Sequence record: ON529853.1
Strand: one strand, 5' to 3'
DNA: 64,000 nucleotides
A program made the translations under genes and the position numbers. The notes under the pieces were generated by a model, which searched no databases, was not told the DNA's origin, and was given only the letters and a program-made list of their open reading frames with translations. Positions 34,656-52,187 of the stretch are shown here, piece after piece. Within the stretch, counting starts at the first letter, position 1, and each line of letters starts with the position of its first letter.

Positions 34656-34684
34656 ATAAATAGCCTCTATGAATCGCCGTCATG

Positions 34685-34782: not shown

Positions 34783-34830
34783 ATCACTCGTGCGCTTCGC
34801 GCCCTCGTGCCTGCCTCCGGCAGCCCTCCT
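34783..34830 (+). repeat. Twin-hairpin element, copy A
   Basis: ATCACTCGT-GCGC-TTC-GCGC...CTGCC-TCC-GGCAG. Confidence 0.8.
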
Positions 34831-35130
34831 TCGGAACTCCCTGCGGTCGCTACTGCGTGAACCTGTTTCGGTCCAGACCAGACAAGGCCTGGCACGGCTG
34901 GATCGGTTGGATCGGTTGGATTGGTCCCTGCGGGCTCATTCGGTCAAGGCCTGGCACGGCTGGATCGGTTGCTGCGGGCTGTTTCGCTTAAGGATTGGCA
35001 CGGCTGGATCGGCTCTCCGGTCAACACCAGGCATAGCTGGATCGCTGCAACGTCTGGTCGGCTCCACAGCTTCACAGCATGACAACCTTCGGACCTCCAC
35101 GACGGGACGGCCGAACCGAGTCCAGGGCTT

Positions 35131-35180
35131 CCGGAGGACGGCTGGCGAAGCCAGTCACGAGGGGGCGAAGCCCACGAGTG
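35131..35180 (-). repeat. Twin-hairpin element, copy B (inverted)
   Basis: CACTCGT-GGGC-TTC-GCCC...CTGGC-TTC-GCCAG on minus strand. Confidence 0.8.
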
Positions 35181-35450
35181 GAGCACTGTCATTTTTCACG
35201 GCGGTGGTTGACAGCACCACCGGCAGTCCGTAGACAACCTGGGCCGGGAGCGTTCTGCTCAGTCCGTGACCGGCTCTGGAAGAGAAGAGCGGCCGGCCCC
35301 TCCCGTACGAGGATGCTGGTCGCTCCGATCTCGCGGGATCAGGCTTTCCTGAACTTTCCTGAAATGTATCCCAACATTCCGAAGGGGTCCCGCAGGACCA
35401 CCGCCGTGTAGAATGCAGGACCACCGCCCGCATAATGCGCCAGGTCGAGC

Positions 35451-35548
35451 ATCACTCCTGCGCTTCGCGCCGTCGTGCCCGGCTCCGCCGGCCGCACCTC
35501 CGGTCGCCCTATAGGATAAGGCCCGGCACTCGAACGCAGGTCGAGCCG
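35451..35548 (+). repeat. Twin-hairpin element, copy C
   Basis: About 100 bp near-identical to copy D. Confidence 0.85.
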
Positions 35549-35712
35549 GCCGCAACGTCAACACGGTGCCCGACAAGGCTCGGCACAGCCGTGTGATTGC
35601 TTGGACTTTCCTGAAATCTATCCCAAAAAATCGCAACAGCCTTCACGGTCAAACCAATTTTCAACCGACTCGGGCTCACGCCGGCCTTGTCCTGGAGGGG
35701 CCTAGTCGGCCC

Positions 35713-36000
35713 TCAGCGGGCCTCTGGGATCAGCGGGACGCCGTTCAGGACCGCGTCGAACTGTTCGATCAGGTCGTAGGTGGATTTCATCTCGCCGTCG
35801 ATCTCGACCTCGTCCAGGTTCCAGTCCGTGGCGATGCTGGCGAGTTGCCGGGCGACCCGGACCGCTTCGAGCGCGGCGAGCAGGCGCTGATAGTCGGGGT
35901 CTTCCAGGATCAGGTCCTGGTCGTCCGGGTGGACGCCGATCAGGCGGGTGCGGATATAGCTGGCGAGGATGTCGGCTTGGGTCGGGGGTGCTGAGGTCAT
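35713..36000 (-). CDS. hypothetical protein
   Basis: ORF with typical codon usage. Confidence 0.65.
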   Translation of the reverse strand: MTSAPPTQADILASYIRTRLIGVHPDDQDLILEDPDYQRLLAALEAVRVARQLASIATDWNLDEVEIDGEMKSTYDLIEQFDAVLNGVPLIPEAR

Positions 36001-36019
36001 GCCTTTATGTGTCAGGCAT

Positions 36020-36190
36020 CTTGACCGGGGTCAAGGGGATCGCCGCCCGCCCCGGTGCAACGGAGCGGGCGCGCAGCCTGGTCAAACAGCAAACCCCAGG
36101 CGGGCGCACCACAGGGGCGCCTCGATCTCGCGCTCACCGAAGAGCGCCACGTCCGCCGCAGTAGGAACGAGAACCTGCGCGAACGGACCT
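36020..36190 (-). ncRNA. candidate sRNA 3
   Basis: TTGACC-N17-CAATGT promoter (36221-36193); shares hairpin with sRNA 1. Confidence 0.35.
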
Positions 36191-36296
36191 GGACATTGCC
36201 GTCGATCCTGACAAAGGTCAAGGAAAATCCCCGCATGTCCACAGGCGCGTCGCCCAGGCCGGTCAAGGAAAATGCCGCCCTGCGGTGGTCCGGCCA

Positions 36297-36421
36297 GCAA
36301 AAACCCGCCGGCGAGGGACCGGCGGGTTCGGGCTCTGTTCAGGAAGCCGCGCTCGTGAAGAGCGCCACAGCCGCCTTGCCGGGGAGGTACTGAAAGGAGT
36401 CGACGGTCCCGGCGCGACTGG
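36297..36421 (-). ncRNA. candidate sRNA 1 (~120 nt) with anti-SD-like CUCCUUU/CCUCCCC motifs
   Basis: TTGACA-N17-CATACA promoter (36456-36428), terminator 36297-36329, no ORF. Confidence 0.5.
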
Positions 36422-36466
36422 ACCTTCTGTATGCCGGGGCTGGCAGTGTGTGTCAATGGGGCTGAC

Positions 36467-36562
36467 ACGAAAAGACCCGCCGGCGAACCGACGGGTCTGG
36501 ATCGATCAAGATGCTTTATCTCGAAAGCCGGAGCCCCGGACGGCACAGGATACGCGTGCCTT
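36467..36562 (-). ncRNA. candidate sRNA 2 (~95 nt)
   Basis: TTGACA-N17-CATAAG promoter (36597-36569), terminator ~36467-36500. Confidence 0.45.
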
Positions 36563-36639
36563 GTTCCCCTTATGGGGCGAACCGTGCTGGGTGTCAAGAA
36601 TCCAGGCAGCCGAGATTCCTCCCGAGGGCGGGCGCCGGG

Positions 36640-37077
36640 TCAAGAGACGGGGCGGACGGCGGTCGCGTAGTTGTCGAACGCGTCGATTCGGATGCAGAAG
36701 GAGACGATGTCCCCCGGCTTGAACCGGTTGTCCGCCTCTGCGATCCAGGCGTCCCCGTCGACAGGTCCTGTGCGGCGCACGTAGAGGCGTCCCGAGGGGT
36801 GGGTGCGTACGATCCCCCTGTAGCGGTTGTTCCTCAGCTTACGGACATCAACCGCGTGGTCGGTGCCGTCCTCGGTGACCTGGAGATCGAACGCCACGCG
36901 CTCGCCCCGATACAGAGGCGCGCAGCCGGAGCGGAATGCGGCGTCCGTGAGCATGGGGACGCGGCGGTCCCCAGCGGTGGTGTCCGTGATGATGCTATAG
37001 GCGCCATCGCGTAGGTCGAGGTAACCGTCTCTGACGTATTCCTTGCGAAAAGCGTACTCTGCGGGTGTTTCGCTCAT
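36640..37077 (-). CDS. protein with two divergent cold-shock-like OB folds
   Basis: GERVAFDLQVTEDGTDHAVDVRKL and GDIVSFCIRIDAFDNYATAVRPV. Confidence 0.55.
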   Translation of the reverse strand: MSETPAEYAFRKEYVRDGYLDLRDGAYSIITDTTAGDRRVPMLTDAAFRSGCAPLYRGERVAFDLQVTEDGTDHAVDVRKLRNNRYRGIVRTHPSGRLYVRRTGPVDGDAWIAEADNRFKPGDIVSFCIRIDAFDNYATAVRPVS

Positions 37078-37790
37078 CAGTCTTCCCTTCTCTCGGGCAC
37101 GCCGTATTCGGCCTCCGGGTATTGGTCGTGGGTGTAGTCCTCGACCGCGTCGAAGCCTTGCTCCTTGGCGATCTCCAGAGCCTCGTCAGCGCTGCTGGCG
37201 CGGATCGTCCACTGGTCGCGGCTGGTCCAGGTCACGTCGATGTCGTAGAGGCCTTCGCCTTCCGGCTCAGGTTCCGGCGTCGGGTCGGACACGGTGATCG
37301 TTATGGCGGTGGTCTCGGCCGCCTGCCCCTGGACAGTTTCCCGGATGGTGACGACGCCTTCGTCGGTCGCCGAGAGGACTTCCACCCGATGACCCCGGAG
37401 CGCGCTCAGGCGCCCTTCTTCGTGGGCCGCCGCGATGACCCGGTTGAGATAGTAGCGCGACACCCCGTCCATGAAGACCTTGAACTCGGACTCCAGCAGC
37501 ACGCGGCGGATGAAGGCTTCATCGGTCACATAGGCGCCGATGTTCGATCGCAGGAAGCGGTGGCGATAGTCCGGCAGGGACTCGGGCGCGACCGCGACCA
37601 GATCGTGCGCGACCAACTCGGTATCTTCGGCTCGCAGGGCGAACTCGACCTGGGCGAAGCGCGGCAGATCGGCCAGGCCTTGCAGGGCGCCGTCGGCGAC
37701 GCGCACCGTCCTCACGGTGGGTTCGCGCTGCGCGACGAACCAGCGGTCGTTGAACTGGAAGAGGCCTCCGCGATTAGGGCGTTCGGTCAT
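37077..37790 (-). CDS. hypothetical protein
   Basis: GGAGA RBS before MTERPNR. Confidence 0.75.
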   Translation of the reverse strand: MTERPNRGGLFQFNDRWFVAQREPTVRTVRVADGALQGLADLPRFAQVEFALRAEDTELVAHDLVAVAPESLPDYRHRFLRSNIGAYVTDEAFIRRVLLESEFKVFMDGVSRYYLNRVIAAAHEEGRLSALRGHRVEVLSATDEGVVTIRETVQGQAAETTAITITVSDPTPEPEPEGEGLYDIDVTWTSRDQWTIRASSADEALEIAKEQGFDAVEDYTHDQYPEAEYGVPERRED

Positions 37791-37860
37791 GGGGTCTCCT
37801 TGGGGATCAGATCGGCGTTGAAGTGGGCGCGGCCACGCCTGTCGGTGAAGAAACCCTCCA

Positions 37861-38067
37861 TCATGGGTAGACCTGCTTGACGTCGGCTGCTCGGTCGCCG
37901 CCCTCGCACACAGGCGCCAGACGATAGGTGACAATGTCGCCCGGCGCGAAGACCTTGTCGTCCACGCCACCCTCAACGGGAAGCCAGTCCTCGTAGCCCG
38001 ACACCTGGGTGGTCAGGAAGGCGTTCGGACCCGCACAGTGCAGGATGCCTTGAAGACGTTCGGTCAT
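37861..38067 (-). CDS. single cold-shock-like OB-fold protein
   Basis: GDIVTYRLAPVCEGGDRAADVKQV. Confidence 0.55.
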   Translation of the reverse strand: MTERLQGILHCAGPNAFLTTQVSGYEDWLPVEGGVDDKVFAPGDIVTYRLAPVCEGGDRAADVKQVYP

Positions 38068-38954
38068 CCCGCCACCGGCATGATGTCGACCGCAAACGTC
38101 TGGCCGGTCTGGTTGCGCTCCAGTCGGTAGGTCACGACGGGGCTATCGCCTTCCTCGATCTGCACCACGAAGGTGCCGGCGGTGGCGATCCAGTGCTGGT
38201 GGTTCGACTCCTGGGTCGCCACGAAGATGTCGCGACCGGAGCGGATCAGGATGCCGCGCTTGCGCGGCGACGGGTTGCTGCCGTCAGCCTGGCCGCAGGC
38301 GTCATAGGTGCTGTTCGGCAGGGGCTTCCTGGGGGCGAAGGGCCGGATGGCGGTCGCGTAGCGCTGCCCGGAATTCCCTTCGATCACCGCGTAGGAGACG
38401 CGCTCGTGCGGCCGCAGCCCGTATTCCTGCCCCGAGGTCAGCCTGATCGCGTCGCTGCCGTCCTCGGGGTAGATCACGACCCAGGCGTGCGACATGCCCG
38501 GCGTGTCCGTGGGCTCCTTCTGGGTGCCGATGATGCCGGTGAACCGCGCGGGCGCCTTCGCCGTCTCGGGCGACCCGCCGGGGACGAAGAACTCGCCGCG
38601 TTCCTGCACCTGGAACAAATAGTCGATCCGCTCGCGTTCTTCCTGGGTCACGTAGTCTGGGCCGTGCGCCCGCTGCGCGACATCCAGGGCGTCGCTGATG
38701 AAGTTGATCTCGCACTGCCTGCGGGGCGTCCCATTGTGCATACGGGCGCCGACCAGCATGCCGCTGAGTTCGGCGTCCGACGCGATGTCGAAGGGGATTG
38801 TCCGACAGAGGAACAGCGCCAACGCCAACGCGCGGTCCATCCCGAGCCGCGCGCCATGCCCCTGCGGCAAGCGACGATGATAGTCGTTGTCCACCGCCTT
38901 CTCGTATAGGAACAGGATCAGGGCGGCGTGCTGCTCGCGCGTCTTCGGGGTCAT
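38064..38954 (-). CDS. protein with two C-terminal cold-shock-like OB folds
   Basis: ERVSYAVIEGNSGQRYATAIRP and VVTYRLERNQTGQTFAVDIMPV. Confidence 0.55.
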   Translation of the reverse strand: MTPKTREQHAALILFLYEKAVDNDYHRRLPQGHGARLGMDRALALALFLCRTIPFDIASDAELSGMLVGARMHNGTPRRQCEINFISDALDVAQRAHGPDYVTQEERERIDYLFQVQERGEFFVPGGSPETAKAPARFTGIIGTQKEPTDTPGMSHAWVVIYPEDGSDAIRLTSGQEYGLRPHERVSYAVIEGNSGQRYATAIRPFAPRKPLPNSTYDACGQADGSNPSPRKRGILIRSGRDIFVATQESNHQHWIATAGTFVVQIEEGDSPVVTYRLERNQTGQTFAVDIMPVAG

Positions 38955-39052
38955 CGGGGCTCCTCTTGTCTGTCAACGAACGACGTAGCAGGCGCCGACA
39001 GGATATGCAACAGCGATTGACAGGATCGGCGGCACACGCTTATGGTCGCGTC

Positions 39053-39778
39053 ATGATCCTGACCGACCTCGCCCAGCATAACCAGAAGCGGCTGAAGAAG
39101 CACGACGTCATGTCGATCGCCCGCTCGGTGAAGAAGCACCTCTCGCGCCTGACGTCCATGGGCTACGTCGCCGGCGCCGTCGCGGCGGGCGAGCGCGGCA
39201 TCGTCACCGTCACCACGCAAGGCCGCCGCTTCGAGGTCGCGGTGCGCGAGATTTCCTGCGATGAAGAGATCGACCAGGCCAACGCGTTCAACGCGGCTCG
39301 CAAGGCCCTCGACCCAGAGAACCTGCCGCCGGTCGCCGGCCCTGCCCCCGAGGGCGTCATCCAGACGCTCGCTGCCGAAGCGCGGCACGGCTGTCCGATC
39401 AAGACCTGGGTTTCCGCACCTCCGCCTGGGGTGATCACCGGCAAGGCGTCGCGCGTCCTGGAAGCCCGGAGCACCCTGGCCGGGCTCAACATCGACGGCG
39501 AGTACGTCTATCGCAACTACGCGGTCAACTATGACGGCCGGACCTGGGACGACCTGACGCCGAGCGAGCGCCTGTCGTGGGACGACCAGGCGGCGCTGCT
39601 CGTCGGCCGCCTCGCCCGGAAGAAGGCCCCGGAGCCCGTCGCAGCGGAGCCGGTCACCGGCCGCGACCTCTACATGACGATGATCGACAACTCCGGCGTC
39701 CACTGTAACCGCTTCCCTGGCTGGGACGAACTGGACGCGGCCGCGCAGGCGGATTGGAACCGAAAGGCTCAAAACTGA
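39053..39778 (+). CDS. hypothetical protein, probably leaderless
   Basis: TTGACA 39017, GCTTAT ~39038, ATG ~8 nt later. Confidence 0.65.
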   Translation: MILTDLAQHNQKRLKKHDVMSIARSVKKHLSRLTSMGYVAGAVAAGERGIVTVTTQGRRFEVAVREISCDEEIDQANAFNAARKALDPENLPPVAGPAPEGVIQTLAAEARHGCPIKTWVSAPPPGVITGKASRVLEARSTLAGLNIDGEYVYRNYAVNYDGRTWDDLTPSERLSWDDQAALLVGRLARKKAPEPVAAEPVTGRDLYMTMIDNSGVHCNRFPGWDELDAAAQADWNRKAQN

Positions 39779-40578
39779 TGCACTGGGTCCTGCAAGAGAA
39801 CATGTTCGGCGAACTCGCCTACGCCGAGTTCTGCCGCACGCTGGGCCGGCTCGGCCTGCCCTATTCGGTCCACCGGGTCGTCCCCTTCATCGGGACCTTC
39901 CTGGACGAACCGCAGATCGACACGAACAACGCCATCTGCATGGGCTCCTACTCGATGCGCTACAAGGCCGCCGAGATGGGATGGAATCCCGGTGTGTTCG
40001 ATCTGGAGCCGTTCGACTTCCCCGTCCAGCACGCCCACTGGGGCGCCAACATGCTGAACGCGGACTCGCGCGTCCTGCCGCTGCGCGAGGTGAACCTGGG
40101 CGAGACGCGCGCCTTCATCCGCCCGAGCCACGACACCAAGGCCTTCCCGGCGAAGGTCTATGATCCGTTCGAGTTTGTGGAGTGGCAGGCCAGGGTCGAG
40201 AAGCTGGGCGACATGCCTCGGGAAATGCTGGACCGCAACACCCTGGTCCAGGTCAGTCCCGTGCGGGAAATCTATGAGGAATACCGCTTCTGGGTGATCC
40301 GGGGCGAGATCGTCTGCGCCTCGCTCTACAAGCGCGGCGACCGGGGGCTCCATGACGCCGACGTGCCGCTGGCCTACCACGAGTACGTCCGCGCCATGAT
40401 CGACATCTGGCAGCCGCACGAGGCCTTCGTGATCGACGTGGCGAACGTGCCCGACGACGGCGACGGCTGGCGCGGGATCAAGATCATCGAGATCAACACG
40501 ATCAACGCGGCGGGCTTCTACGCGGCGAACCTGCCGAAGCTGGCGATGGCGTTCGAAGACGCCTTCAACGAGGGCTGA
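39778..40578 (+). CDS. ATP-grasp domain protein (DUF4343 / R2K-type)
   Basis: FIRP..DTKAF, EYRFWV..GEIV..SLY, AFVIDVA, IIEIN.INAAGFY. Confidence 0.8.
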   Translation: MHWVLQENMFGELAYAEFCRTLGRLGLPYSVHRVVPFIGTFLDEPQIDTNNAICMGSYSMRYKAAEMGWNPGVFDLEPFDFPVQHAHWGANMLNADSRVLPLREVNLGETRAFIRPSHDTKAFPAKVYDPFEFVEWQARVEKLGDMPREMLDRNTLVQVSPVREIYEEYRFWVIRGEIVCASLYKRGDRGLHDADVPLAYHEYVRAMIDIWQPHEAFVIDVANVPDDGDGWRGIKIIEINTINAAGFYAANLPKLAMAFEDAFNEG

Positions 40579-40581
40579 CGG

Positions 40582-40758
40582 GTGTCGTTCGGCCACCGCC
40601 CGCCGATCTCTGATGATGTAATCCGACACATCCGCAGTACCGAGACGACCGACAAGACGCTGTGCGGGCGGGCCATCGGCCGGGTCTATGACGAACGCCC
40701 AGGCTCCCCCGCCACCTGCAAGAAGTGCATCCGCCTGAGAGACGCCTGTCCATGCTGA
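40582..40758 (+). CDS. small putative Zn-binding protein
   Basis: H...TLCG...TCKKC; own translation. Confidence 0.5.
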   Translation: MSFGHRPPISDDVIRHIRSTETTDKTLCGRAIGRVYDERPGSPATCKKCIRLRDACPC

Positions 40759-41108
40759 AGCTGTTCCGCCGCCGTCCTAAACCGCCGCCGGCGCCGCCCG
40801 CTTTTCAACCGCCGCCCCAGGTCGAGATCGTCGAGACCTATGACGGCTACCTGATCCGCCAGGCGGGGACGGGCCTATACGCCTGGTTCGCGAACGCTGA
40901 TGTCCCTCATTGGCATCCGCGCGACTGGCGCAATCATGATCACCCGTTCGGTTACGCCTACTCGCTCTACCGCTCCAAAGACCTCGAACTCGCCCGCACC
41001 ACCTGCGCTCAGGTCGAGGCCTACATGGGGCGTGAGGCGGAGCGGGACCATCGCACCGCCGTGGAGGCCTTCGAGCGCGCCGTCTACGCCGAGCGGGTGA
41101 TCACCTGA
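40752..41108 (+). CDS. hypothetical protein
   Basis: Operon position. Confidence 0.65.
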   Translation: MLKLFRRRPKPPPAPPAFQPPPQVEIVETYDGYLIRQAGTGLYAWFANADVPHWHPRDWRNHDHPFGYAYSLYRSKDLELARTTCAQVEAYMGREAERDHRTAVEAFERAVYAERVIT

Positions 41109-41362
41109 TGCCCGCCACCGAAACCTACATCTGCCTCACCTGCCGGAAGGACTTCACGGCCCGCACCGCCGACCGCCTGCGCGGCTGGGCGCGGTTCTGC
41201 TGCAAGTCCTGCAAGGCCAAGCAGATGAAGCCGGGCATTCGGGGCCGCCGCGTCACCCACGTCATCGTCGACGAATACGCCCTGGGCGGCTCGGTCGCCA
41301 ACGGCGCCTATCACGACTTCGACGACACCCACCCCTTCTCGGGCGACGCCCTGGAGCCGTAG
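41108..41362 (+). CDS. small zinc-finger protein
   Basis: CLTC...FCCKSC. Confidence 0.7.
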   Translation: MPATETYICLTCRKDFTARTADRLRGWARFCCKSCKAKQMKPGIRGRRVTHVIVDEYALGGSVANGAYHDFDDTHPFSGDALEP

Positions 41363-41364
41363 CG

Positions 41365-42348: not shown

Positions 42349-42358
42349 GGACCACCGC

Positions 42359-42862
42359 CTAGAGCGTGATGGTGATGCGGACGTTCTCCGGCGGCACGCC
42401 GAAGTGATCGGCGACCAGGTCCTTGGCCTGGTCGACCACCGCCTTCGGTTCCTGAATAGGGTCGACTTCGATCCAGATCAGGGCGTTCAGGTCGATGTCC
42501 AGATCGCCCGAGTCGAAGTATTGCACCGGGTTCTTGCCCTTGAATGGGATCAGCAGCGGGCCGTCCACCAAGGCATAGCGCTCGAAGGTGATCTTCTGCC
42601 GGCCGTCGCCATCGTCGGCGTCCACGATCTCGCCGACCTCGCCTATCAGGAAGGCGTGCTTGTGCTCGACATCGGCGGTCTCGCCCTTGTGGCTGTAGGG
42701 GCCGTGCAGGTTGCGGGCGCAGATGACCCACCCGGTCCGACGCAGGCGGCTGCGGTCGGCGCGCCAGGACTGCGTCCCGCCTTCGCGGAGAATTTGGTCG
42801 ACGCTCTTGTAGGTCAGGACGGCGACGTAGGTGTCAGGCCGCGCCAAGGCAATGTTCTCCAT
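42359..42862 (-). CDS. bacterial-type hypothetical protein, possible PUA/EVE-like fold
   Basis: GGTQSW...VICARN...HAFLIG...FERYA...KNPVQY and C-terminal AKDLVADHFGVPPENVRITI. Confidence 0.6.
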   Translation of the reverse strand: MENIALARPDTYVAVLTYKSVDQILREGGTQSWRADRSRLRRTGWVICARNLHGPYSHKGETADVEHKHAFLIGEVGEIVDADDGDGRQKITFERYALVDGPLLIPFKGKNPVQYFDSGDLDIDLNALIWIEVDPIQEPKAVVDQAKDLVADHFGVPPENVRITITL

Positions 42863-42933
42863 GAATGATGCAAACATCCATAGGACAGGCCCAACATTGC
42901 GTCAATACCACCGCCTACAATGCGGCAATGTTT

Positions 42934-43039
42934 ATCACTCCTGCGCTTCGCGCCGTCGTGCCCGGCTGCCGCCGGCCGCACCTCCGGTCACCCTATAGGA
43001 AAAGCGATCAGCCCCGGCACTCGAACGCAGTTCGAGCCG
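42934..43039 (+). repeat. Twin-hairpin element, copy D
   Basis: Near-identical to copy C. Confidence 0.85.
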
Positions 43040-43102
43040 CACGGCCTATTCGACCACCACCGTCCTCTGTCCCAGGACACAGGACACCAGGCTCGGCACG
43101 GC

Positions 43103-43405
43103 CTATTCGACTGCCTCGACCGGATCGCCTTTCCCGTTCAGGCCAGGCTCAACGTCATCCCCGTTCAGGCCCGGCACGACCGCAACGACCTCTCGGCCCG
43201 TCCGCCGGCATGTCTCCAGCAGCGTCTCTTCCAATCGACCGGCCCGGTTCCTGGACCGCCACACGATGTCGACCTGGCAGATGAAGGGCTGGTTGTTCAG
43301 GATGCGGACGGCGCGAGCGCGCGCCGAGTCCATGTCGAACGCCTCCGACAGCGGCTCCAGCCGCTTGACGAAATGATGTTCCTGGTGGCGTCGGGTCCCG
43401 ATCAT
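43103..43405 (-). CDS. hypothetical protein
   Basis: ATGA coupling. Confidence 0.5.
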   Translation of the reverse strand: MIGTRRHQEHHFVKRLEPLSEAFDMDSARARAVRILNNQPFICQVDIVWRSRNRAGRLEETLLETCRRTGREVVAVVPGLNGDDVEPGLNGKGDPVEAVE

Positions 43406-44327: not shown

Positions 44328-44384
44328 CGGGGCGTCTCCTCTTCAGTTGAGGATCATGTAAAGGAATGATTTGAGGCTGTCAAC

Positions 44385-45365: not shown

Positions 45366-45468
45366 GGCGATCTCCTCTTCAGTTGAGGCGATCTGTAAAG
45401 GAACTAAGTGCGGTGGTCAAGCCTTCAATCTGAGGGGTTGGCGGACAGGCCTGGAGTCGCGGGCGCGC

Positions 45469-45564
45469 CTAGTTGTTCGACAGGATTTCCCCGACCATCA
45501 TGAAGATGAGCATCAGGAAAATGAAGGCGACGAGTCCGAAGGCGATGTAGTCGATGGGTTGCAT
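45469..45564 (-). CDS. 31-aa single-TM peptide
   Basis: MQPIDYIAFGLVAFIFLMLIFMMVGEILSNN; AAGGA RBS. Confidence 0.55.
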   Translation of the reverse strand: MQPIDYIAFGLVAFIFLMLIFMMVGEILSNN

Positions 45565-45675
45565 GCGTCTTTCCTTTTGTCTGCGAAGGCGATCAGTCGC
45601 CTGAAGAAGTCGTCCGGCGCCGGCCGGAGCCCCGGCGAACGGTAGTAGGGATCGCCGTTACGGGTCCAGTAGGAC

Positions 45676-45975
45676 TCAGCCGGCATGGTCGTCCGCCAGA
45701 CGTTTGTCGCGGGCGTCCATCGTCGCCAGCATCATGGACAGGCTACCGATGCACGCAAACGCCTTGGGGTAGCTGTTCGGCTCCGCCTCGGCGTCACGGC
45801 AAACCGCCTTAACACCCGCCGCCATGTCCTTGACCGCCAGCGTGCGCTCGTCGGCCACACGCTCGTCGGCGCGCTCCTGCATGATCTGGTGCGTCACGAG
45901 GAAGGTGGTGGTGACCGCGAGCATCACGGCGATCCCGAACAGCGCCCATAGGGCGGCCTTGTCAGTCTTCGTCAC
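45676..45975 (-). CDS. membrane-anchored hypothetical protein
   Basis: N-terminal TM, GAGGAG RBS. Confidence 0.7.
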   Translation of the reverse strand: MTKTDKAALWALFGIAVMLAVTTTFLVTHQIMQERADERVADERTLAVKDMAAGVKAVCRDAEAEPNSYPKAFACIGSLSMMLATMDARDKRLADDHAG

Positions 45976-46270
45976 TGGCGCGGAACTCCTCTTTCAAGCT
46001 GTAAAGGCGCAACACGCGATTGCGTCCCAGGCTGTCACAGGCGTGGAGCCGTCCGATCTCGAAACGCTCGTCCCGGCCGAGCCAGGACGCCGCGACCTGG
46101 GCGCGGTTGAGCGGGTGCGGGCTCATGCCCTTCCACAACTTGGGTTCAGGCACGGCGTCGCAGAAGGCCGAGTTCATCCAGCCGTCCATGACACAGACGC
46201 TCCAGATGACGCCGCCGCCTTCGCGGCGCATCAGGGCGATCATGGCGTCGCCGACCGGATTGGTCTTCAT
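45962..46270 (-). CDS. hypothetical protein
   Basis: ATGA coupling. Confidence 0.65.
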   Translation of the reverse strand: MKTNPVGDAMIALMRREGGGVIWSVCVMDGWMNSAFCDAVPEPKLWKGMSPHPLNRAQVAASWLGRDERFEIGRLHACDSLGRNRVLRLYSLKEEFRASDED

Positions 46271-46641
46271 GCCGTGATCCCCATGCGGCGCATCAGGCCG
46301 CTGATGTAGCGGGCGCCGAAGGCGTGGTAGGTGAAGAAGAGCGACGGGTGCCCGAAGCAGTCGTCGTTGCGCCCGACCTCGTTGCGGGCGGCGCGCTCGC
46401 GGGCGTCGCTCGGCATGATGCAGCCGTTCGCGGCCGTATGTAGGGCGCCGACGCAGTAGGCGGTCTCGGGGTTCTCGGGGCCGTGGTCGCGCAGGTGGCA
46501 GGACGGGACCTGGTTCTCCTGCACCACGTCGGCATACCATTGCGCTTCGTGCCCGCCCAGGTAGCCCTGGAGGGCGTCCTTGCGCCACGGGCACTCGTTG
46601 CAGGGGGTCTTGTGGATCAGGCGGCGGTTGTCGGTGGTCAC
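46267..46641 (-). CDS. Cys/His-rich DUF6283-like protein
   Basis: PCNECPWRKD...CH......YCVG. Confidence 0.55.
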   Translation of the reverse strand: MTTDNRRLIHKTPCNECPWRKDALQGYLGGHEAQWYADVVQENQVPSCHLRDHGPENPETAYCVGALHTAANGCIMPSDARERAARNEVGRNDDCFGHPSLFFTYHAFGARYISGLMRRMGITA

Positions 46642-46916
46642 GAAGGCTCCTGGATTTCGCGGTGGCTCAAGCGCGCCCAGACGAAGGCGCGCATCCGTCC
46701 GGCGCCGACGCATTGTTCGCGCGAGGCGTTCGGGGCGGGCTCGGTGCAGATCATCTGCTCGGCGTCTGCGAGGTCTTTGAGCACGGCGCGGCGTTCGTCG
46801 ACCTCTCCCTGCTGGGTCTGGCTGGAAACCCCGGCGGCGAGGCCGACCACGAAGATGAGGGCGGCGGCGAGAAACGCCACCACCGTCACCAAGGGGGTAG
46901 TCCGGCGGTCGCCCAT
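46638..46916 (-). CDS. membrane-anchored hypothetical protein
   Basis: N-terminal TM. Confidence 0.65.
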   Translation of the reverse strand: MGDRRTTPLVTVVAFLAAALIFVVGLAAGVSSQTQQGEVDERRAVLKDLADAEQMICTEPAPNASREQCVGAGRMRAFVWARLSHREIQEPS

Positions 46917-47524
46917 CAGATCGTCTCCAGCTTCTTGCCCGTCAGGGCTTCCAGCGCGGCGGCGGCCGCGCGATAGTTCTCCAGCCGGAACACCGACGTG
47001 GCGGGTCCGCCGACGAAGCCGTGGTCGGTCCAGATTTCATGGCTGCCGTCTTCGGCCGCGTCGTAGCTGCGCACGACGGCCGCGAACGGGGCCAGCGCCG
47101 CGATCGCCTGTTCGAGCGTTTCCACCGAAGGGGTGGGCGGCGGCGTGTAGGGGCGGATGTAGGAGATGATGCACTGCCAGGCGACGTCGGGGAAATCGCA
47201 GGCGCGGCCGCGCATCACCGCCCCCGTCACCAGCCGGGCCTCGATCACCGTCTCGCCGACGGGGTTGACGTCGCCGGTGAACTTCAACCAGCCGTCCCGG
47301 CGGGGCCGCCCGATGAAGGTGTAGTAGGTCAGCGGTCCCGCCATCCCACCGATGCCGATGCCGCCGCCCTTCGCAGCGCTGGGGTCCCGCTGAAGGGTTC
47401 GGATCGCGCCGAAACACGGACGGCCGCGATGCGTCGCCCACACAAAATCGCCAACCTGGATATGGGCCGAGTTCTGGATCGTCAGGCGCTCGCCGAGCGC
47501 GGGCAAGGTGGTGGTGTCGGTCAT
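46916..47524 (-). CDS. hypothetical protein
   Basis: Coupled operon gene. Confidence 0.75.
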   Translation of the reverse strand: MTDTTTLPALGERLTIQNSAHIQVGDFVWATHRGRPCFGAIRTLQRDPSAAKGGGIGIGGMAGPLTYYTFIGRPRRDGWLKFTGDVNPVGETVIEARLVTGAVMRGRACDFPDVAWQCIISYIRPYTPPPTPSVETLEQAIAALAPFAAVVRSYDAAEDGSHEIWTDHGFVGGPATSVFRLENYRAAAAALEALTGKKLETI

Positions 47525-47889
47525 GCTTTAAAGCCTGCGTTTCCAATGGACAGGCCTACGGCGGCGGCCATACGGTCGCTGATCTCGCGCAGCGTGGTGG
47601 TTTCACCGGCGATGAAGGTGTTGCGCTCGGCGACCCATTCCCGGATCAGAGCCTCCAGGTCCGGCGCGTTGTGCAGCCGGATGACGAAGGGCTCGTCGCA
47701 GGGGTCCTCGAAAATAGAGTCCTTGGCCTTGGCGTACCACTGGTAGAGGTAGGTCCCGTCGTAGCGGAACAGACGCGGGTCGCGGACGCCGACCTTCGGC
47801 ATCTGGTTATAGGCGAAGGATTCCATGTCAGGGACGTGGGTCCGGTCCGCCGAAGCCGGGAAATCATACGTCAGGTGCGTGTCGCTCAT
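47521..47889 (-). CDS. hypothetical protein
   Basis: GGAGG RBS, class-2 promoter 47916. Confidence 0.8.
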   Translation of the reverse strand: MSDTHLTYDFPASADRTHVPDMESFAYNQMPKVGVRDPRLFRYDGTYLYQWYAKAKDSIFEDPCDEPFVIRLHNAPDLEALIREWVAERNTFIAGETTTLREISDRMAAAVGLSIGNAGFKA

Positions 47890-47938
47890 GCGGTCCTCCT
47901 TCGTGGTCAGGGGTGTGTAAAGGAACGGATTGCGTCTG

Positions 47939-49489
47939 TCAACGATTGCCGGACAACTGGACCTGTCTTTCGAGCGTGTCGGTGAAGGCTGCCCACAGGC
48001 CCTCGTTGACGATGAAGTCGTCGCGCAGCCGCAGCAGGTCCGACCACTCGGTCTGTGTCCGCCACGGGTTCTCTTCGTCTTCGGGCTTGATCTTCAGTTC
48101 GTCCAGCACGACACGGGCGTGGGCATGAGCCCGGCGGGCGCCGGCTTCGGCCTGTTTCCATGCGTTGGTGTCCAGGTGGCGCTGGCCGGGATCGTAGAAG
48201 GCCAGGACGAAGTTGAGCGCGCCCCAGCACTTCTCCAGCGCCTCGGTCGCGGCCTTGTAGGCGTCGGCGTCACGGAGGCCCTGCTGACCGGCTTCGGTTT
48301 CCCGTTCCTGCGCCGCCGCGTCCAGCCGGGCGTTGTAGGCCGCCACGCCACGCTTCAGGTAGTCCATCCAGTCGATTGCGGTGCAGCGCTCGAAGTAGGC
48401 GGGATCGTCCGCCGGCAGGGCGGCGTTCGTGCGCCAGCCGGCCCGGAAGGCCGCGAACTGGTCAGCCGCCGCTTGCAGGCCGATCATCGTCCACAGGTCA
48501 TCCGTCAGCAGTCGGATGGCCCCCACGGGCGCGGACTTGTGCGGATGGTCGAACAGGCCGCCCGCGATCAGGTCGAACAGGTGGTCGGCGGACCGGAGCA
48601 ACGCGGGCGTCTGGATGGCCTCCATATAGGGTCGATCAGGCGCGTGCACCTGCGGGCAGGAGCCGCTCTTCAGCATATCAGCGGCCGCGTTACAGGCGTC
48701 CCAGACCTTGCCGTAGCTACTGGAGACATTCTCCCCGTCGACTTCCAGGGCCTCGAACACAGCGTCGGTGATGGCACTGCCGATGGCGCTACGGAGCAAG
48801 CCGTCATTGACGTTCTGGTCGACTCTGCGTCCCGCAGCGCCGCACAGGATCGGCCACAGGGCGTTCGCCACGTCGTCCGCCATCAGGTCGTAGTCGCCGG
48901 CCCGGCGGTGCGTGATCAGGTCCTTCACTGTCGCTTTCAGCGCCGCCTCATCCTTGAACGCGGGGGTATGGGGCGCCGCCTTCAAGGCCTCGGTCGCCAT
49001 GTCGCAGGCGCGCTCGGCGGCGGCCCGGAACTTCTCGTCGCCGCTGTCGCAGCGGGCGATCCACAGCTTGTCCTGGCACTCCAGCAGGGCGTCGCGCAGG
49101 ACCTCGGCGTTCCGCGCACTATCCAGGGCGCGCGCCCACATGCGGAACTTGGCCGCTGCCGTGCGGCATGAGGCGGCGGTCACGCGGCTGCTCTCCGCCC
49201 GCTTGGCCTTGTTGGAATCCGGGTTCTCCGCCCAGTCCGCCGCGTCCTCATCGTAGCGCACGGCGTCATCATCGTTCGATTCGGCCTGACGCACGCAGTA
49301 GGCCTGCAAGGCGACGATGCTTGGGCTGGCGGGGAGTTCCCCCGCGACCGACTGCGCCTGGGCCTGGCCGGGTTCGCCATAGATCGCGAAGCCCTCGCCG
49401 GGCTCCCAGTGGACGGGGTAGTCGGCGCCCCACCAGGTGATGTGGCGGTCGTTGCGGACCCAGCCGAGCAGCGTGCGGGTATCAGTCAT
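47939..49489 (-). CDS. large mosaic hypothetical protein
   Basis: GGAG RBS before MTDTRTL. Confidence 0.75.
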   Translation of the reverse strand: MTDTRTLLGWVRNDRHITWWGADYPVHWEPGEGFAIYGEPGQAQAQSVAGELPASPSIVALQAYCVRQAESNDDDAVRYDEDAADWAENPDSNKAKRAESSRVTAASCRTAAAKFRMWARALDSARNAEVLRDALLECQDKLWIARCDSGDEKFRAAAERACDMATEALKAAPHTPAFKDEAALKATVKDLITHRRAGDYDLMADDVANALWPILCGAAGRRVDQNVNDGLLRSAIGSAITDAVFEALEVDGENVSSSYGKVWDACNAAADMLKSGSCPQVHAPDRPYMEAIQTPALLRSADHLFDLIAGGLFDHPHKSAPVGAIRLLTDDLWTMIGLQAAADQFAAFRAGWRTNAALPADDPAYFERCTAIDWMDYLKRGVAAYNARLDAAAQERETEAGQQGLRDADAYKAATEALEKCWGALNFVLAFYDPGQRHLDTNAWKQAEAGARRAHAHARVVLDELKIKPEDEENPWRTQTEWSDLLRLRDDFIVNEGLWAAFTDTLERQVQLSGNR

Positions 49490-49499
49490 GGGGGCTCCT

Positions 49500-50048
49500 T
49501 TAGACCATGTCCAGGGCGCGCAGTCGCGCGGCGGCGGCGTAGACCCGAACGGTCTCACGGGTGATTCGGGGGTCGCTCAGGCTGCTGGTCACCAGAGGGG
49601 CGTGGCACTCGTCGGTCGGCTCGAACACACCCAACGACATGGCGCGCCCGGTGTAGATTTGTTGGTAGGACAGGGGGAACGGGTAGGGGTAGTGCCCCTC
49701 CGGCTTGTCGCCGGCGCAGAACATGCGCAGATAGCCGAGAGGCTCGGGATCGCGCACGTCGTCGACTCCGGTCTCCTCGCGCAGTTCGCGGAGCGCCGCG
49801 TCCAGCATCCCTTCGCCGGCCTCGATATGACCGCCCGCCATCTCGATTCCGCGCCGGGTGTTATGCGCCAGGACCACCGCCCAGGTGTCCAGATAGGGGA
49901 CCATGAAGGCGGTCCGGGTCAGGTCTTCCGGCGCCTCGTCGTCCGACAGGATCAGGTCCACCCGGTTCGGCTTCGGCAGCCAGTCGACGTCAAACTGGGT
50001 GCGCGCGATCACGGCGCCCGGCGGCAAGGCGGTATGGGTGGTGGACAT
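49500..50048 (-). CDS. NUDIX hydrolase
   Basis: Nudix box GGHIEAGEGMLDAALRELREETGV. Confidence 0.95.
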   Translation of the reverse strand: MSTTHTALPPGAVIARTQFDVDWLPKPNRVDLILSDDEAPEDLTRTAFMVPYLDTWAVVLAHNTRRGIEMAGGHIEAGEGMLDAALRELREETGVDDVRDPEPLGYLRMFCAGDKPEGHYPYPFPLSYQQIYTGRAMSLGVFEPTDECHAPLVTSSLSDPRITRETVRVYAAAARLRALDMV

Positions 50049-50214
50049 GGGCGCTCCTTCAACAGTTCTCTCGCCGTGTAAAGGAACGGTGTGAGGATTA
50101 CAAGCAGAACTTCTTGCCGCCTGACAAGATTCATGTCACTCAAGATTCACCGTCAGGGAGAACCCCTGCCGGCGCCAGGCGGCTGCGGCCGTCGATCGAA
50201 AGGACCACCGCCCC

Positions 50215-51336
50215 ATGAGCGGCACCGACCTGCGCGTCCGCGCGCACCTGACCTATTCCGTCACCGGCTACCACCGCACCGAGAGCACCGGCACGAGCCG
50301 GGTCGTCGGCGAAGGCTTCACCGCCGAAAAGGCTAACGAGATCGCGGCGGCCGTGCACGCTGTCACCGACCAGCCGGGCGATCTGACCCAGATGGTGGTC
50401 AGCGAGATGACCTTCAGCCTGGATAGGCGCGACGCGCCCTCGTGGCTGGCCGAATCCTACGCTCACCTGGCGGCGCAGCCGGAGGGGTCCGTCTACATGT
50501 TGGAACGTCTCCCGGCGTCGAAGGTGCGCCTGACGAAGGTCAAGCCGAGCACGGCGCCGGCCTTCAAAATCGACGTCACGGGCTTCGAGATCAAGAGCGT
50601 CCTGGGCAATCTCCAGACCGTCGCTGATACGGTCAAGGATTCCATCATGCGCGAGATCAGCCGCATCAACCTGCCCGAGCGGTGGGAGGACCTGTCGAGC
50701 GAAACCACCCGGCGTGGGCTGGAAGCCTTCATGGCGGTCCAGACGGTGGGCAAGGACGCCTGGCGTGATCATGAGATCGAGGCGCTGGTGACCCGCATCG
50801 CCCTGCGCACCGGCAAGGCCAAGATCGATCTGCGCCGCATGTTCGAGAGCGCCCAGGAGCGGGTGATGGAGGCCAAACGCATCCTGGCGGACGCCGTCCC
50901 GACCAAGGCGCCCCTGACCTCGCGTGAAGAGCATTACTGCAAGAACCGCGCGAAGGGCTGCACGCCCCACGACGCCGCGCGCTACGCGGGGTTCCTCAAC
51001 GATCCGACGTCGGCGTTCAATACCGCCCTGCTGGAAAACTCACCCCCGATCCAAGCGCGGATCGCGGAACTGATCACGGCCAAGGCGCCTGCCGAAGCCA
51101 CGCCCCAAGCCCTGCCCGCCGGCGCCGCCCGCCTCGACAACGCCACCCAGGAGTTCTTCGCCCTGAACATCGGCTTCTACGGCATGACGGTCGAGGCGGC
51201 CGCCAAGCAGATGAGCCTGCCGTTGGAAACGGCGGACGGTCTGATGGAGATGCCGACGGTGAAGGCGCGGATCAAGTTCTTCCAGCGCACGCTCCAGGCA
51301 AACGTCGAGGCCTTCCGCGCGGAAGGCCCGCAATGA
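50215..51336 (+). CDS. protein with C-terminal TerS-like HTH repeats
   Basis: YCKNRAKGCTPHDAARYAGF...IQARIAEL aligns with TerS YARHRAKGMNAAKAALAAGY...VIARIEEL. Confidence 0.65.
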   Translation: MSGTDLRVRAHLTYSVTGYHRTESTGTSRVVGEGFTAEKANEIAAAVHAVTDQPGDLTQMVVSEMTFSLDRRDAPSWLAESYAHLAAQPEGSVYMLERLPASKVRLTKVKPSTAPAFKIDVTGFEIKSVLGNLQTVADTVKDSIMREISRINLPERWEDLSSETTRRGLEAFMAVQTVGKDAWRDHEIEALVTRIALRTGKAKIDLRRMFESAQERVMEAKRILADAVPTKAPLTSREEHYCKNRAKGCTPHDAARYAGFLNDPTSAFNTALLENSPPIQARIAELITAKAPAEATPQALPAGAARLDNATQEFFALNIGFYGMTVEAAAKQMSLPLETADGLMEMPTVKARIKFFQRTLQANVEAFRAEGPQ

Positions 51337-51680
51337 AGCGCGTCTTCGACGACCACGGCCTCTGGAACCCGGAGGCTCACGCCGCCGGGCTCCGGGCGCT
51401 GCCCCTGGTGAAACAGGCGTTCGAACTGCTGCTGGGCGAGGGCTACAACCCTCGCGAGGCGCAGGCGCTGATCACCGCCACCGTGGATGAAGAGACGTTG
51501 GACCGCATCCTCGTCGTCAAGGATCGGCTTCGACTGAAGCGGGCGGGGCACGCCGAGGCGGAACGGGTCGGCAACCTGCGCCGGCATGTGCCGTTCCCGC
51601 CGGCCGACCATCCTGTCTTCACGCCAGAGCACAAGGCGAAGGCCTTTGACCTGGTGCGGCCTGAAGGCGAATCAGCATGA
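51333..51680 (+). CDS. hypothetical protein
   Basis: ATGA coupling. Confidence 0.7.
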   Translation: MKRVFDDHGLWNPEAHAAGLRALPLVKQAFELLLGEGYNPREAQALITATVDEETLDRILVVKDRLRLKRAGHAEAERVGNLRRHVPFPPADHPVFTPEHKAKAFDLVRPEGESA

Positions 51681-51955
51681 CCCCCGGCTATCGCGTCAAG
51701 CCCGTGGTGGACGGCCGGATTCGCAACCGGTACGGCTATGAGCAGCGGGTCGGACCCGGCGCCTACACCATCATCGACGCCGACGACAACCCGATCCGGG
51801 TCCACAACGGCTTCGCGGTCTTCACCTCCGTCGAGCAGGCGGCCTGGTGCGTCGAGTTGATGAGGGTCGCCTTCTTCGAGGGCGAGGCCAGCGTCAAGGC
51901 GGCCATGCGGAACCTGCTCGACATCCCTGAACCACCGGACGACGACGAAGACTGA
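51677..51955 (+). CDS. hypothetical protein
   Basis: ATGA coupling. Confidence 0.7.
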   Translation: MTPGYRVKPVVDGRIRNRYGYEQRVGPGAYTIIDADDNPIRVHNGFAVFTSVEQAAWCVELMRVAFFEGEASVKAAMRNLLDIPEPPDDDED

Positions 51956-51962
51956 TGGCGGC

Positions 51963-51991
51963 TTGACGGTATGGAGGCGGACGTGCTACAC
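51963..51991 (+). promoter_or_regulatory. sigma70 promoter upstream of tRNA
   Basis: TTGACG-N16-GCTACAC matches Caulobacter housekeeping consensus. Confidence 0.75.
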
Positions 51992-52060
51992 AACGCCCCA
52001 TGCTGACCGCCCTGAGAACCAGGACTGCCTAAGCGCCCCTGACCACCGGGGCGCTTCTTG

Positions 52061-52135
52061 GCGTCTATGGTGTAGCGGACAGCACAGCGATCTTCTAAAT
52101 CGTGAGCCCTGGTTCGAATCCAGGTAGACGCGCCA
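52061..52135 (+). tRNA. tRNA-Arg(UCU)
   Basis: Acceptor GCGTCTA/TAGACGC, anticodon loop CTTCTAA, T arm CCTGG-TTCGAAT-CCAGG, encoded CCA. Confidence 0.92.
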
Positions 52136-52187
52136 TCACTCGTGGGCTTCGCCCCCTCGTGACCGGCTCCGCCGGCCGCACCTCCGG
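52135..52187 (+). repeat. Twin-hairpin element, copy E
   Basis: Begins at the terminal A of the tRNA CCA. Confidence 0.85.

Follow-up and report, generated by a model that had tools for sequence, protein, structure and literature searches.

A covarying, strand-locked triple-hairpin repeat in the variable arm of Brevundimonas phage Bambus, probably a boundary and recombination cassette

The window analysed here, a stretch of 64,000 nucleotides, comprises bases 1-64000 of the 348-kb genome of Brevundimonas phage vB_BpoS-Bambus, a phiCbK-like jumbo siphovirus. In the phiCbK-like jumbo phages the function of about three quarters of the genes is unknown, and to our knowledge their origins, promoters and terminators are unmapped. 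Five copies (A to E) of an element of about 60 nt lie in the window, and the element adjoins a non-coding control region in which an AT-rich patch, iterons and two copies in inverted orientation are combined with a 250-nt block that does not vary. The features are as follows:

34670..34760, no strand: AT-rich patch beside A, 33-35% GC, holding two predicted signals
34765..34773, plus: (G)ACCACCGCC box upstream of A
34783..34841, plus: copy A, covariance-model match, 75 bits
34883..35048, plus: iteron array CAAGGCCTGGCACGGCTGGATCGG, 4-5 copies, between A and B
35124..35182, minus: copy B, covariance-model match, 79 bits, inverted partner of A
35200-35208 (minus), 35397-35405 (plus), 35420-35428 (plus), 42907-42915 (plus) and 42351-42359 (plus): other intergenic ACCACCGCC boxes
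35208..35236, plus: promoter-like TTGACA-N17-TAGACA, read by eye and not flagged by the consensus scan
35451..35510, plus: copy C, covariance-model match, 83 bits, kept in four relatives
42877..42905, minus: promoter-like TTGACG-N17-TATGGA of gene 00680, read by eye
42934..42994, plus: copy D, covariance-model match, 82 bits
52135..52194, plus: copy E, covariance-model match, 85.5 bits
52215..52300, plus: two GCCCGGCAC...TCCCG-NN-CGGGATCA modules downstream of E

A degenerate 25-nt pattern, for which shuffles give 0 expected matches, matched the window exactly five times (34785+, 35180-, 35453+, 42936+ and 52137+), which confirms all five positions of the original prediction. Five is not the total, since a covariance-model search of the whole Bambus genome recovered at least 10 copies, all within the hypothetical-gene arm (34-176 kb) and with a spacing of 7-40 kb. 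For comparison, 37 copies (32 distinct) were collected from Bambus, its four close relatives Marchewka, Domovoi, Papperlapapp and Kabachok, from Gurke and CcrColossus, and from two metagenome contigs.

As a single strand the element folds into three short G+C hairpins (H1, H2 and H3); its earlier description as a twin hairpin captured two of them and missed the third, of 3 bp. H1 rises from an invariant CAC/GTG base through a 2x2 internal loop and a single G:C pair, which is C:G in copies C and D, to a top that varies and is 4-7 bp long. A gap of one nucleotide separates H1 from the 5-bp H2, while H3 reads (A/T)CC-TYC-GG(T/A), its first pair alternating between A:T and T:A. Every hairpin is capped by T-N-C, i.e. 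G-N-A on the complement, and each copy added to the original five has this cap. The stem-1 types GCGC or GGGC, the stem-2 variants CCGGC, CTGGC and CTGCC, and the complement-strand loops GAA or GGA (GGCA in copy D) had been read correctly, with stem 1 now extended outward to the CAC/GTG helix. The GGAG said to precede stem 2 in all copies is present as part of H3, but copy I and several Gurke copies lack it.

Across the 37 copies, 99.2% of cells are paired, whereas the figure is 87.7% for shuffles and falls to 30-38% if the partners are slid, and double changes occur in 8 of the 16 pairs, a level reached by 0 of 500 shuffles; the compensatory pairing first proposed is thus borne out. Stem 2 of copy A, for instance, is CTGCC/GGCAG in Bambus and Domovoi and CTGGC/GCCAG in Papperlapapp and Kabachok. 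The H1 top has been replaced wholesale with hairpin and triloop retained, and in copy B of Papperlapapp and Kabachok the stem-1 top is a different 7-bp helix with a GCA loop. On the purine strand the unpaired bases are all G or A (tandem GA/GA, a G.A mismatch and the GNA loops), and H1 is 2-3 kcal/mol more stable there. The few non-Watson-Crick pairs that are kept are G.T or G.U only, on the pyrimidine strand opposite the GNA loops, and one Colossus copy has G.G at the position of a G.U pair.

This triple-hairpin repeat is a member of no described family. An Rfam scan at gathering thresholds matched a tRNA only, and one of positions 34600-35800 returned nothing at E<=10; an exact-pattern scan of one genome per bacterial or archaeal species (GTDB) gave just two partial matches, in unrelated MAGs, and the phiCbK and PeSL papers cited here do not mention the element. 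It is found in a single phage clade, the Bambus-like, Gurke-like and Colossus-like Dolichocephalovirinae. The element of the original prediction is thus real, structured and undescribed, its features being as compatible with RNA as with single-strand DNA; the suggested identity as an N4-type promoter was not supported, and that as a REP did not hold.

Restriction to one clade would suit a selfish or neutral repeat of MITE or REP kind, spread by recombination, kept uniform by gene conversion and functionless, or else a set of strand-specific nick sites of T5 kind. Loci also turn over between genera (five Bambus-only, five Gurke-only), copy J lies within a coding region, and the packaged DNA of phiCbK-like phages has T5-like long terminal repeats (PMC3556154). 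However, orthologous copies with compensatory changes extend from Brevundimonas to Caulobacter phages, which argues for purifying selection on the structure; among the 571 annotated features there is no RAYT, HUH or transposase gene, target-site duplications and a conserved insertion target are both absent, and an element lacking the GTAG head is not a REP. We therefore regard such an origin as highly improbable. Copy A keeps its position and orientation in Marchewka, Domovoi, Papperlapapp and Kabachok, a homologue of its neighbour gene also adjoins the element in Gurke and Colossus, and the triad A+, B-, C+ is kept in five phages.

The copies sit at gene boundaries and often start right on a stop codon or the 3' end of a tRNA. 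In tRNA-Arg(TCT) (52061-52135) the final base of the CCA end is also the first base of copy E, an arrangement that is the same in Gurke; copy H starts at the A of a TGA stop, copy G overlaps the gcrA stop, and copy I holds a stop codon inside a loop, while the Gurke copies lie 5-16 nt past stops and the Colossus copies abut them. Orientation is set by the genome strand and is independent of the direction of the neighbouring gene: 9 of 10 copies in Bambus, 9 of 10 in Gurke and all 4 in Colossus lie on the equivalent strand, B being the sole minus-strand copy in Bambus. The element is not an intrinsic (rho-independent) terminator, as its hairpins lack a U tract in either orientation: no T/U tract follows H3 in the plus reading or H1 in the minus reading of any copy, and a terminator consensus scan flagged none of them. 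Mapping as ordinary terminators, which would have spoken against the original prediction, was thus not seen. Canonical terminators in this arm number 10, versus 9.2 in shuffles, which is no excess.

Copies A and B are 85% complementary over 52 nt and enclose 292 nt. The main iterons between them are spaced 62, 44 and 33 nt from start to start, with one overlapping copy 9 nt from the first; their number and sequence differ between phages, and the TCAAGG core also occurs downstream of the Colossus A copy. On the other side of A, a minus-strand site within the AT-rich patch resembles a promoter, and a hairpin there resembles a terminator, for gene 00550. It is possible, if doubtful, that the element serves as a strand-specific signal recognised in folded single-stranded DNA, either a priming or origin signal or an attC-like recombinase site. 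Were this so, tailed phages (Caudoviricetes) would have a structure-specific DNA signal of a new class, one that would offer a handle on phiCbK-like replication or gene shuffling.

In the first form, which we consider unlikely, A and B would flank an origin composed of the AT-rich patch and phased iterons, their extruded hairpins would recruit the phage primase-helicase, and the other same-strand copies would serve to prime, or to reload the primosome, on one template strand of the replichore; in flanking the iterons and recruiting the enzyme, A and B would be comparable with ssiA and ssiB of RSF1010 oriV. The 9:1 strand bias in Bambus and Gurke, the Bambus exception being the inverted partner of A, and the placing of that pair around phased iterons fit the strand-specific DNA role foreseen earlier. 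Conservation of the triad in five phages, iteron spacings that are roughly multiples of the helical repeat beside a patch of 33% GC, fast-evolving iterons that stay beside the conserved gene 00550/gp440, the all-purine unpaired bases with the more stable H1 on that strand, a shift in GC-skew amplitude at about 35 kb, and a 1218-aa protein with weak primase/helicase PHROG matches are also consistent with initiation. However, Colossus has no inverted B partner, copies 7-40 kb apart are too thinly spread to prime a lagging strand, no non-Watson-Crick pairs are kept other than G.T on the pyrimidine strand, the skew mostly tracks gene direction, the gene annotated as 'DNA primase' is actually ArdC-like, and an initiation signal does not predict the tight fit to stop codons.

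Promoter-like sites accompany many copies. The apparent excess of ACCACCGCC is mostly due to Thr-Thr-Ala codons and is meaningful only for the intergenic copies beside A-D; the box occurs seven times in the Gurke A-B region, and, read as GGCGGTGGT, it stands just upstream of -35 boxes of the other strand in two places. The TTGACA-N17-TAGACA site opens the 250-nt block, which is identical in five phages, the TTGACG-N17-TATGGA site adjoins the H1 end of D directly downstream of GGCGGTGGT, and analogous TTGACA-N17-TACANC sites, seen by eye or consensus, abut copies G, I and two Gurke copies. Putative sigma-70/73-like sites for the next gene, likewise recognised by consensus or by eye, lie beside A, D, F, G, I and several Gurke copies, and the promoter-like sites, predicted from consensus only, are 2-60 nt from the copies and outside the conserved 60-mer. 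The recurrence of GGCAC-type motifs downstream, noted at the outset, was upheld, with 8 occurrences of GGCYYGGCAC versus 1.3 expected, 7 of them on the plus strand; GGCAC boxes like those in the modules that follow E are also present at 35520-35586 and 43014-43177.

These neighbours could be taken to mean that the element acts in cis within plus-strand transcripts, either as a hairpin promoter of N4 kind or as a promoter-proximal leader RNA, antitermination-like as HK022 put, downstream of ACCACCGCC/-10-like sites. In that role it would drive small plus-strand units or modify them, and some of these units would be non-coding RNAs with GGCAC repeats. ACCACCGCC together with TAGAAT-, CATAAT- or TACAAT-like hexamers does lie 9-22 nt upstream of A-D, 7 of the 10 Gurke copies adjoin plus-strand genes, compared with about 22% of junctions, the gap between H1 and H2 is one nucleotide, and the C-GGA-G loops of H2 and H3 resemble the N4 promoter hairpin. 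Against this, E, H, G, I and J have no upstream box, G, I and J have no nearby plus-strand gene, the GGCGGTGGT reading places the box before opposite-strand -35 boxes, and neither the giant proteins, nor the 1218-aa protein, nor the annotation yielded an RNA polymerase domain of virion, single-subunit or N4 type. A transcript role of this kind is, in our judgement, very unlikely. A Papperlapapp protein annotated as 'RNA polymerase' is a multi-HTH protein.

Gene content was compared between phages at two loci only, D and E, where the differences abut copies. At D, unrelated genes lie on opposite sides of the copy in Bambus and in Papperlapapp, and the Bambus-specific insertion is bounded by two ACCACCGCC boxes; at E, Papperlapapp has an extra gene between the tRNA and the element, and its E copy combines the same H2/H3 with a different H1. 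Such exchange would be expected if the element were a structure-specific recombination site analogous to the integron attC, at which a recombinase inserts and excises gene cassettes and thereby fixes the orientation of every copy; the candidate enzyme would be either a tyrosine recombinase of 224 aa, which is conserved in Bambus and Colossus and whose gene lies some 20 kb past the last copy, or the protein encoded beside A. The conserved base, internal loop and variable terminal helix of H1, the placement of copies immediately after ORF or tRNA ends in one orientation, and the new H1 at E agree with this. However, the R/L core sequences (RYYYAAC / GTTRRRY) are absent, H2 and H3 have no attC counterpart, the copies are dispersed and form no contiguous array by the recombinase gene, the genes between them are mostly conserved, no two copies bracket the Papperlapapp insertion, and the D-locus junction falls at a ACCACCGCC box rather than at the element. 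We hold an attC analogue to be rather improbable.

Based on these findings, the element is probably a boundary and recombination cassette, and not a proven single-strand DNA priming site. Promoter-early stem-loop (PeSL) cassettes are known from T4-like phages (PMC2839356, PMC4122927), and as our leading though tentative explanation, drawn by analogy, we propose that the element may be a protein-recognised boundary cassette like them, doubling as a recombination linker. First, where a gene or tRNA ends, the hairpin cluster could fold in the RNA or in DNA that is briefly unwound, and there it might attenuate or process read-through and shield the 3' end. With the next promoter directly adjacent, the unit could then act as a terminator-promoter cassette of PeSL type, and a protein could recognise it as a boundary in the ORFan-rich arm. 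Moreover, as near-identical 60-mers in the same orientation, the copies could provide crossover points for swaps of ORFan cassettes between phages. It is from placement and structure that we infer these roles in termination or processing, protein recognition and recombination. Several observations count against the boundary cassette: the hairpins, lacking a U tract, are no intrinsic terminator; with the strand-locked orientation some mRNAs would contain the pyrimidine version and others the purine version, which one RNA-binding protein would not read alike; the folding energy does not differ significantly from that of shuffles (z -0.4 to -2.2); and the D-locus junction at the ACCACCGCC box, described above, is not at the element. 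A covarying, strand-locked element marks the unit boundaries in the variable genome arm, and its copies are landmarks usable for mapping transcription units and origins and for the mechanism of ORFan exchange.

Among known systems, H2 resembles the N4 virion-RNA-polymerase promoters in that, on one strand, its stem of 5 bp is closed by three purines (C-GGA-G), whereas the element has three hairpins instead of one, some of its copies have no downstream gene on that strand, and an N4-like RNA polymerase was not found in the annotation or the giant proteins. Like REP/BIME sequences with RAYT, it is an extragenic hairpin repeat after stops, sometimes in inverted pairs, but it is phage-borne, lacks GTAG at either end and an annotated RAYT gene, and comprises three mini-hairpins where REP has one palindrome of about 35 nt. 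With the integron attC it shares conservation of structure rather than sequence, a conserved base with a variable terminal helix, and a uniformly oriented position directly after the cassette ORF; it differs in having the extra H2/H3 and no R/L core consensus, and its copies are not arrayed by an integrase and attI site. The ssi signals (G4 oric, RSF1010 ssiA/ssiB) and d(GCGAAGC) mini-hairpins are likewise strand-specific clusters of short, stable GNA-loop hairpins, and the one inverted pair beside iterons and an AT-rich patch adds to this likeness, which is one of structure, no sequence similarity being known, whereas ten copies of the element are dispersed per genome, mostly at gene ends. 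From PeSL, which has a single G-run/C-run stem, the element differs in having three short triloop hairpins with an internal-loop motif that never varies, a promoter outside the conserved unit at varying distance and side, an orientation fixed by the genome strand even where genes run opposite, and no sequence similarity. Like PeSL, however, it recurs between genes as a conserved motif of about 60-100 bp in an ORFan-rich variable region, has stem-loops and a putative adjacent sigma-70-type promoter (here predicted from consensus), and is placed after the stop codon of one gene and ahead of the next, and insertions or replacements between related phages abut it; the ORFan-rich hyperplastic setting with indels at the motif is found in both, with exchange seen here at the D and E loci only. 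The placement at stop codons, putative promoters and cassette junctions suggests a PeSL-like cassette at least as strongly as a priming site.

The repeat of about 60 nt carried by Brevundimonas phage vB_BpoS-Bambus (ON529853.1; hereafter Bambus) is a real, structured and undescribed element, conserved across two host genera. Bambus is a phiCbK-like jumbo siphovirus of the Dolichocephalovirinae with a 348.1-kb genome, of which the window covers bases 1-64000. The five copies originally predicted (A-E) were recovered at their places by a degenerate 25-mer that matches exactly these five and has no match in shuffled sequences, and a covariance-model search of the whole genome gave 10 solid copies, all within 34.8-175.7 kb:

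34783..34841 (+), copy A
35124..35182 (-), copy B
35451..35510 (+), copy C
42934..42994 (+), copy D, between two minus-strand genes
52135..52194 (+), copy E, starting at the last base of tRNA-Arg(TCT)
76.9 kb, copy F, between plus-strand genes
87.7 kb, copy I, with the stop codon of a minus-strand gene inside its loop
111.55 kb, copy J, diverged and within a minus-strand CDS
134.07 kb, copy G, overlapping the gcrA stop codon
175.7 kb, copy H, starting at the A of a TGA stop codon

Copies A-E are all intergenic, and A, B and C share a 1057-nt gene-free stretch flanked by the minus-strand genes 00550 and 00560. Many copies abut the point where the preceding gene or tRNA ends, whichever strand that gene is on. 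A tRNA-derived origin was rejected, because a tRNA adjoins E only and no tRNA-like sequence lies upstream of the other copies. A known RNA family or ribozyme was also rejected, as Rfam returned only the tRNA at gathering thresholds and no match at E<=10 within 34600-35800. Among the relatives, the A(+), B(-), C(+) triad also occurs in Marchewka, Domovoi, Papperlapapp and Kabachok, with D, E and F present in Papperlapapp as well; Gurke holds at least 10 copies and CcrColossus (Colossus) at least four, and CcrPW gives BLAST matches. IMG/VR, the JGI metagenomes and the GTDB genomes yielded only three full-length copies, on contigs resembling related phages.

The stems and loops of the original prediction were correct on inspection, whereas its twin hairpin has to be extended, since RNAalifold and inspection show three hairpins (H1-H3) and further parts of H1. 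At its base H1 has an outer CAC/GTG helix, followed by a 2x2 internal loop in which TC faces TC and by a G:C pair, which is C:G in C and D; above these come a T.C mismatch and a 4-7-bp top helix capped by a triloop. The 5-bp H2 starts one nucleotide after H1, and 2-4 nt beyond H2 lies H3, (A/T)CC-TYC-GG(T/A), whose first pair alternates between A:T and T:A. The loops read T-N-C (TTC, TCC, TGC, TAC), with TGCC or TGAC also found in H2, and G-N-A on the complementary, purine strand, where the unpaired bases of H1 are all G or A, so that its internal loop is a tandem GA/GA and its mismatch G.A.

Covariation was assessed on 37 aligned copies (32 distinct) in an alignment fitted to the model, a caveat under which standard pairs occupy 99.2% of cells, compared with 87.7% after shuffling of the partners and 30-38% after sliding them. 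Both sides have changed in 8 of the 16 pairs (49 cells), and the observed values were reached in 0 of 500 shuffles. The orthologs also differ: in stem 2 of copy A, Bambus and Domovoi have CTGCC/GGCAG where Papperlapapp and Kabachok have CTGGC/GCCAG; in the latter two, another 7-bp helix, with GCA as its loop, forms the H1 top of copy B; and Gurke has GGAGC-TGC-GCTCC as H1 top. These differences in stem 2 and the H1 top lend independent support to the covariation. The structure of the element is therefore under selection, and the additional copies keep both the covariation and the GNA loops.

Folding energies are not significant on either strand (z -0.4 to -2.2 against shuffles) and were dropped as evidence for the element. 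For the standard H1 the purine strand is favoured by 2-3 kcal/mol; for the variant H1, seen in several Gurke copies and in Bambus J, a G.U pair makes the pyrimidine strand slightly the more stable. The five G.U cells are all on the pyrimidine strand, and since the Colossus ortholog has G.G there, this may simply be a mismatch position. Most copies lie on the same genomic strand (9 of 10 in Bambus, 9 of 10 in Gurke, 5 of the 6 fetched from Papperlapapp, and 4 of 4 on the equivalent strand in Colossus), whether with or against the neighbouring genes. The only Bambus exception is B, the inverted partner of A, their arms being 85% complementary over 52 nt.

The A-C region runs, from left to right, through an AT-rich patch, a GACCACCGCC box, A, iterons, B, a block of ~250 nt, two more boxes and C:

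34670-34760, AT-rich patch, adjoining the iteron array region
34883-35048, four to five CAAGGCCTGGCACGGCTGGATCGG iterons, the main ones 62, 44 and 33 nt apart
35186-35440, invariant block of ~250 nt between B and C

The iteron array and AT-rich patch look, from their arrangement, like a replication origin. Iteron number and sequence differ between phages, even at 99.7% overall identity, and some iterons of relatives contain an inserted CTCGAACGTGTTCGAG hairpin; for Marchewka and Bambus, identity is 99.7% overall and falls to 91.5% in the A-C region. The invariant block is 100% identical in five phages with flanks at ~78-90%, begins with the promoter-like TTGACA-N17-TAGACA, flanked by a GGCGGTGGT/ACCACCGG palindrome, and may represent a protein-binding platform or a non-coding RNA; a small or conserved ORF in this B-C block was rejected because of a 7-nt indel in Papperlapapp and Kabachok. 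The corresponding stretch of Gurke contains seven GACCACCGCC boxes along with other short repeats. In Colossus, which lacks a B partner, TCAAGG-type repeats follow the A copy, beside the homologous gene. A repeat, TTTCCTGAA(C/A)TTTCCTGAAATNTATCCCAA, also lies on both sides of C (35345-35374 and 35597-35636).

A role as single-strand DNA better explains the lock to one genome strand and the A/B pair that flanks the iterons; this could be priming at an origin, which is unlikely overall, or attC-like recombination, which is improbable. The following proteins were noted alongside the element:

ON529853.1 337060-337971, annotated 'DNA primase', ArdC-type, with a single-strand DNA-binding N-terminal domain and a zincin peptidase
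26169-28892 (-), large terminase TerL, a 907-aa ORF with Terminase_6C and Intein_splicing, hence an intein
ON529853.1 215065-216450, annotated 'RNA-binding protein', a Ro60-like TROVE and vWA protein

The annotated primase is ArdC-like, probably an anti-restriction protein and not a primase. Weak matches to primase/helicase PHROGs were obtained for a 1218-aa protein, and Bambus and Colossus both keep a tyrosine recombinase of 224 aa. No transposase is among the annotated features. A selfish or nick-site role is very doubtful. The neighbouring protein 00550 has a predicted structure of low confidence (pLDDT 37) and zero matches in a PDB sequence search.

At the genome level, a genome end or terminal-repeat boundary at the element is unlikely, because the repeat, placed from TerL by analogy with the phiCbK terminal repeat, runs away from it (PMC3556154). 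GC skew mostly follows gene direction over the whole genome; its amplitude drops from ~0.07 to ~0.02-0.04 near 35 kb, where genes are still on the minus strand, and a second sign change lies at ~155-157 kb. Few genes surround the Ro60-like one (214-218 kb) and tRNA genes are close by, which makes it possible that non-coding RNAs of the Y-RNA kind adjoin it.

Sigma-70/73-like promoters of the next gene stand beside many copies, by consensus match or by eye. The scan picked up the one next to A. At D, G, I and two copies of Gurke, TTGACA-N17-TACANC sites were recognised by eye 2-18 nt away from the H1 end, and the same reading put promoter-like sites after F and other Gurke copies. That the element itself acts as a promoter or leader on the plus strand is quite improbable. 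The RNA polymerase domain sought for the proposed hairpin promoter was not found in the giant proteins, the 1218-aa protein or the annotation. An ordinary intrinsic terminator was rejected, since 0 copies have a U tract, and this genome arm shows no excess of canonical terminators (10, with 9.2 in shuffles). The predicted downstream GGCAC boxes are indeed in excess (8 against 1.3 expected, 7 on the plus strand); by eye they do not fit the GG-N10-GC spacing of sigma-54 promoters, which were rejected. On an IMG/VR contig from a distant relative (L008:3395-3520), GTGTCCA and TGGACAC repeats after the element replace them, so the element keeps its association with short repeats downstream, and what varies is their sequence. 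Upstream of gene 01440, a conserved TTCATGTTGCTTAA-N12-TGTTGTTTAAG in Bambus (piece L002:13040-13100; genome ~77.05 kb) and Papperlapapp (piece L028:44520-44600) resembles the T4 MotA-box middle promoter, and a phage gene is annotated 'middle transcription regulatory protein'.

Gene content differs beside the element at the two loci compared. Bambus and Papperlapapp have both flanks of the D locus in common, but the genes they carry next to D are unrelated and lie on opposite sides of it, and two ACCACCGCC boxes bound the Bambus-specific segment; ACCACCGCC as a genome-wide promoter box was rejected, being mostly Thr-Thr-Ala codons. At the E locus, Papperlapapp has between tRNA-Arg and the element a gene absent from Bambus:

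ON529860.1 116135-117100, multi-HTH gene (several helix-turn-helix domains), mis-annotated 'RNA polymerase'

The Papperlapapp E copy has an H1 of the other type, with matching H2 and H3. By analogy, we tentatively favour, at less than even confidence, a cassette of the promoter-early stem-loop (PeSL) kind as the best reading of the element, which resembles the PeSL cassettes of T4-like phages in its position, its neighbouring promoters and its cassette junctions (PMC2839356, PMC4122927).
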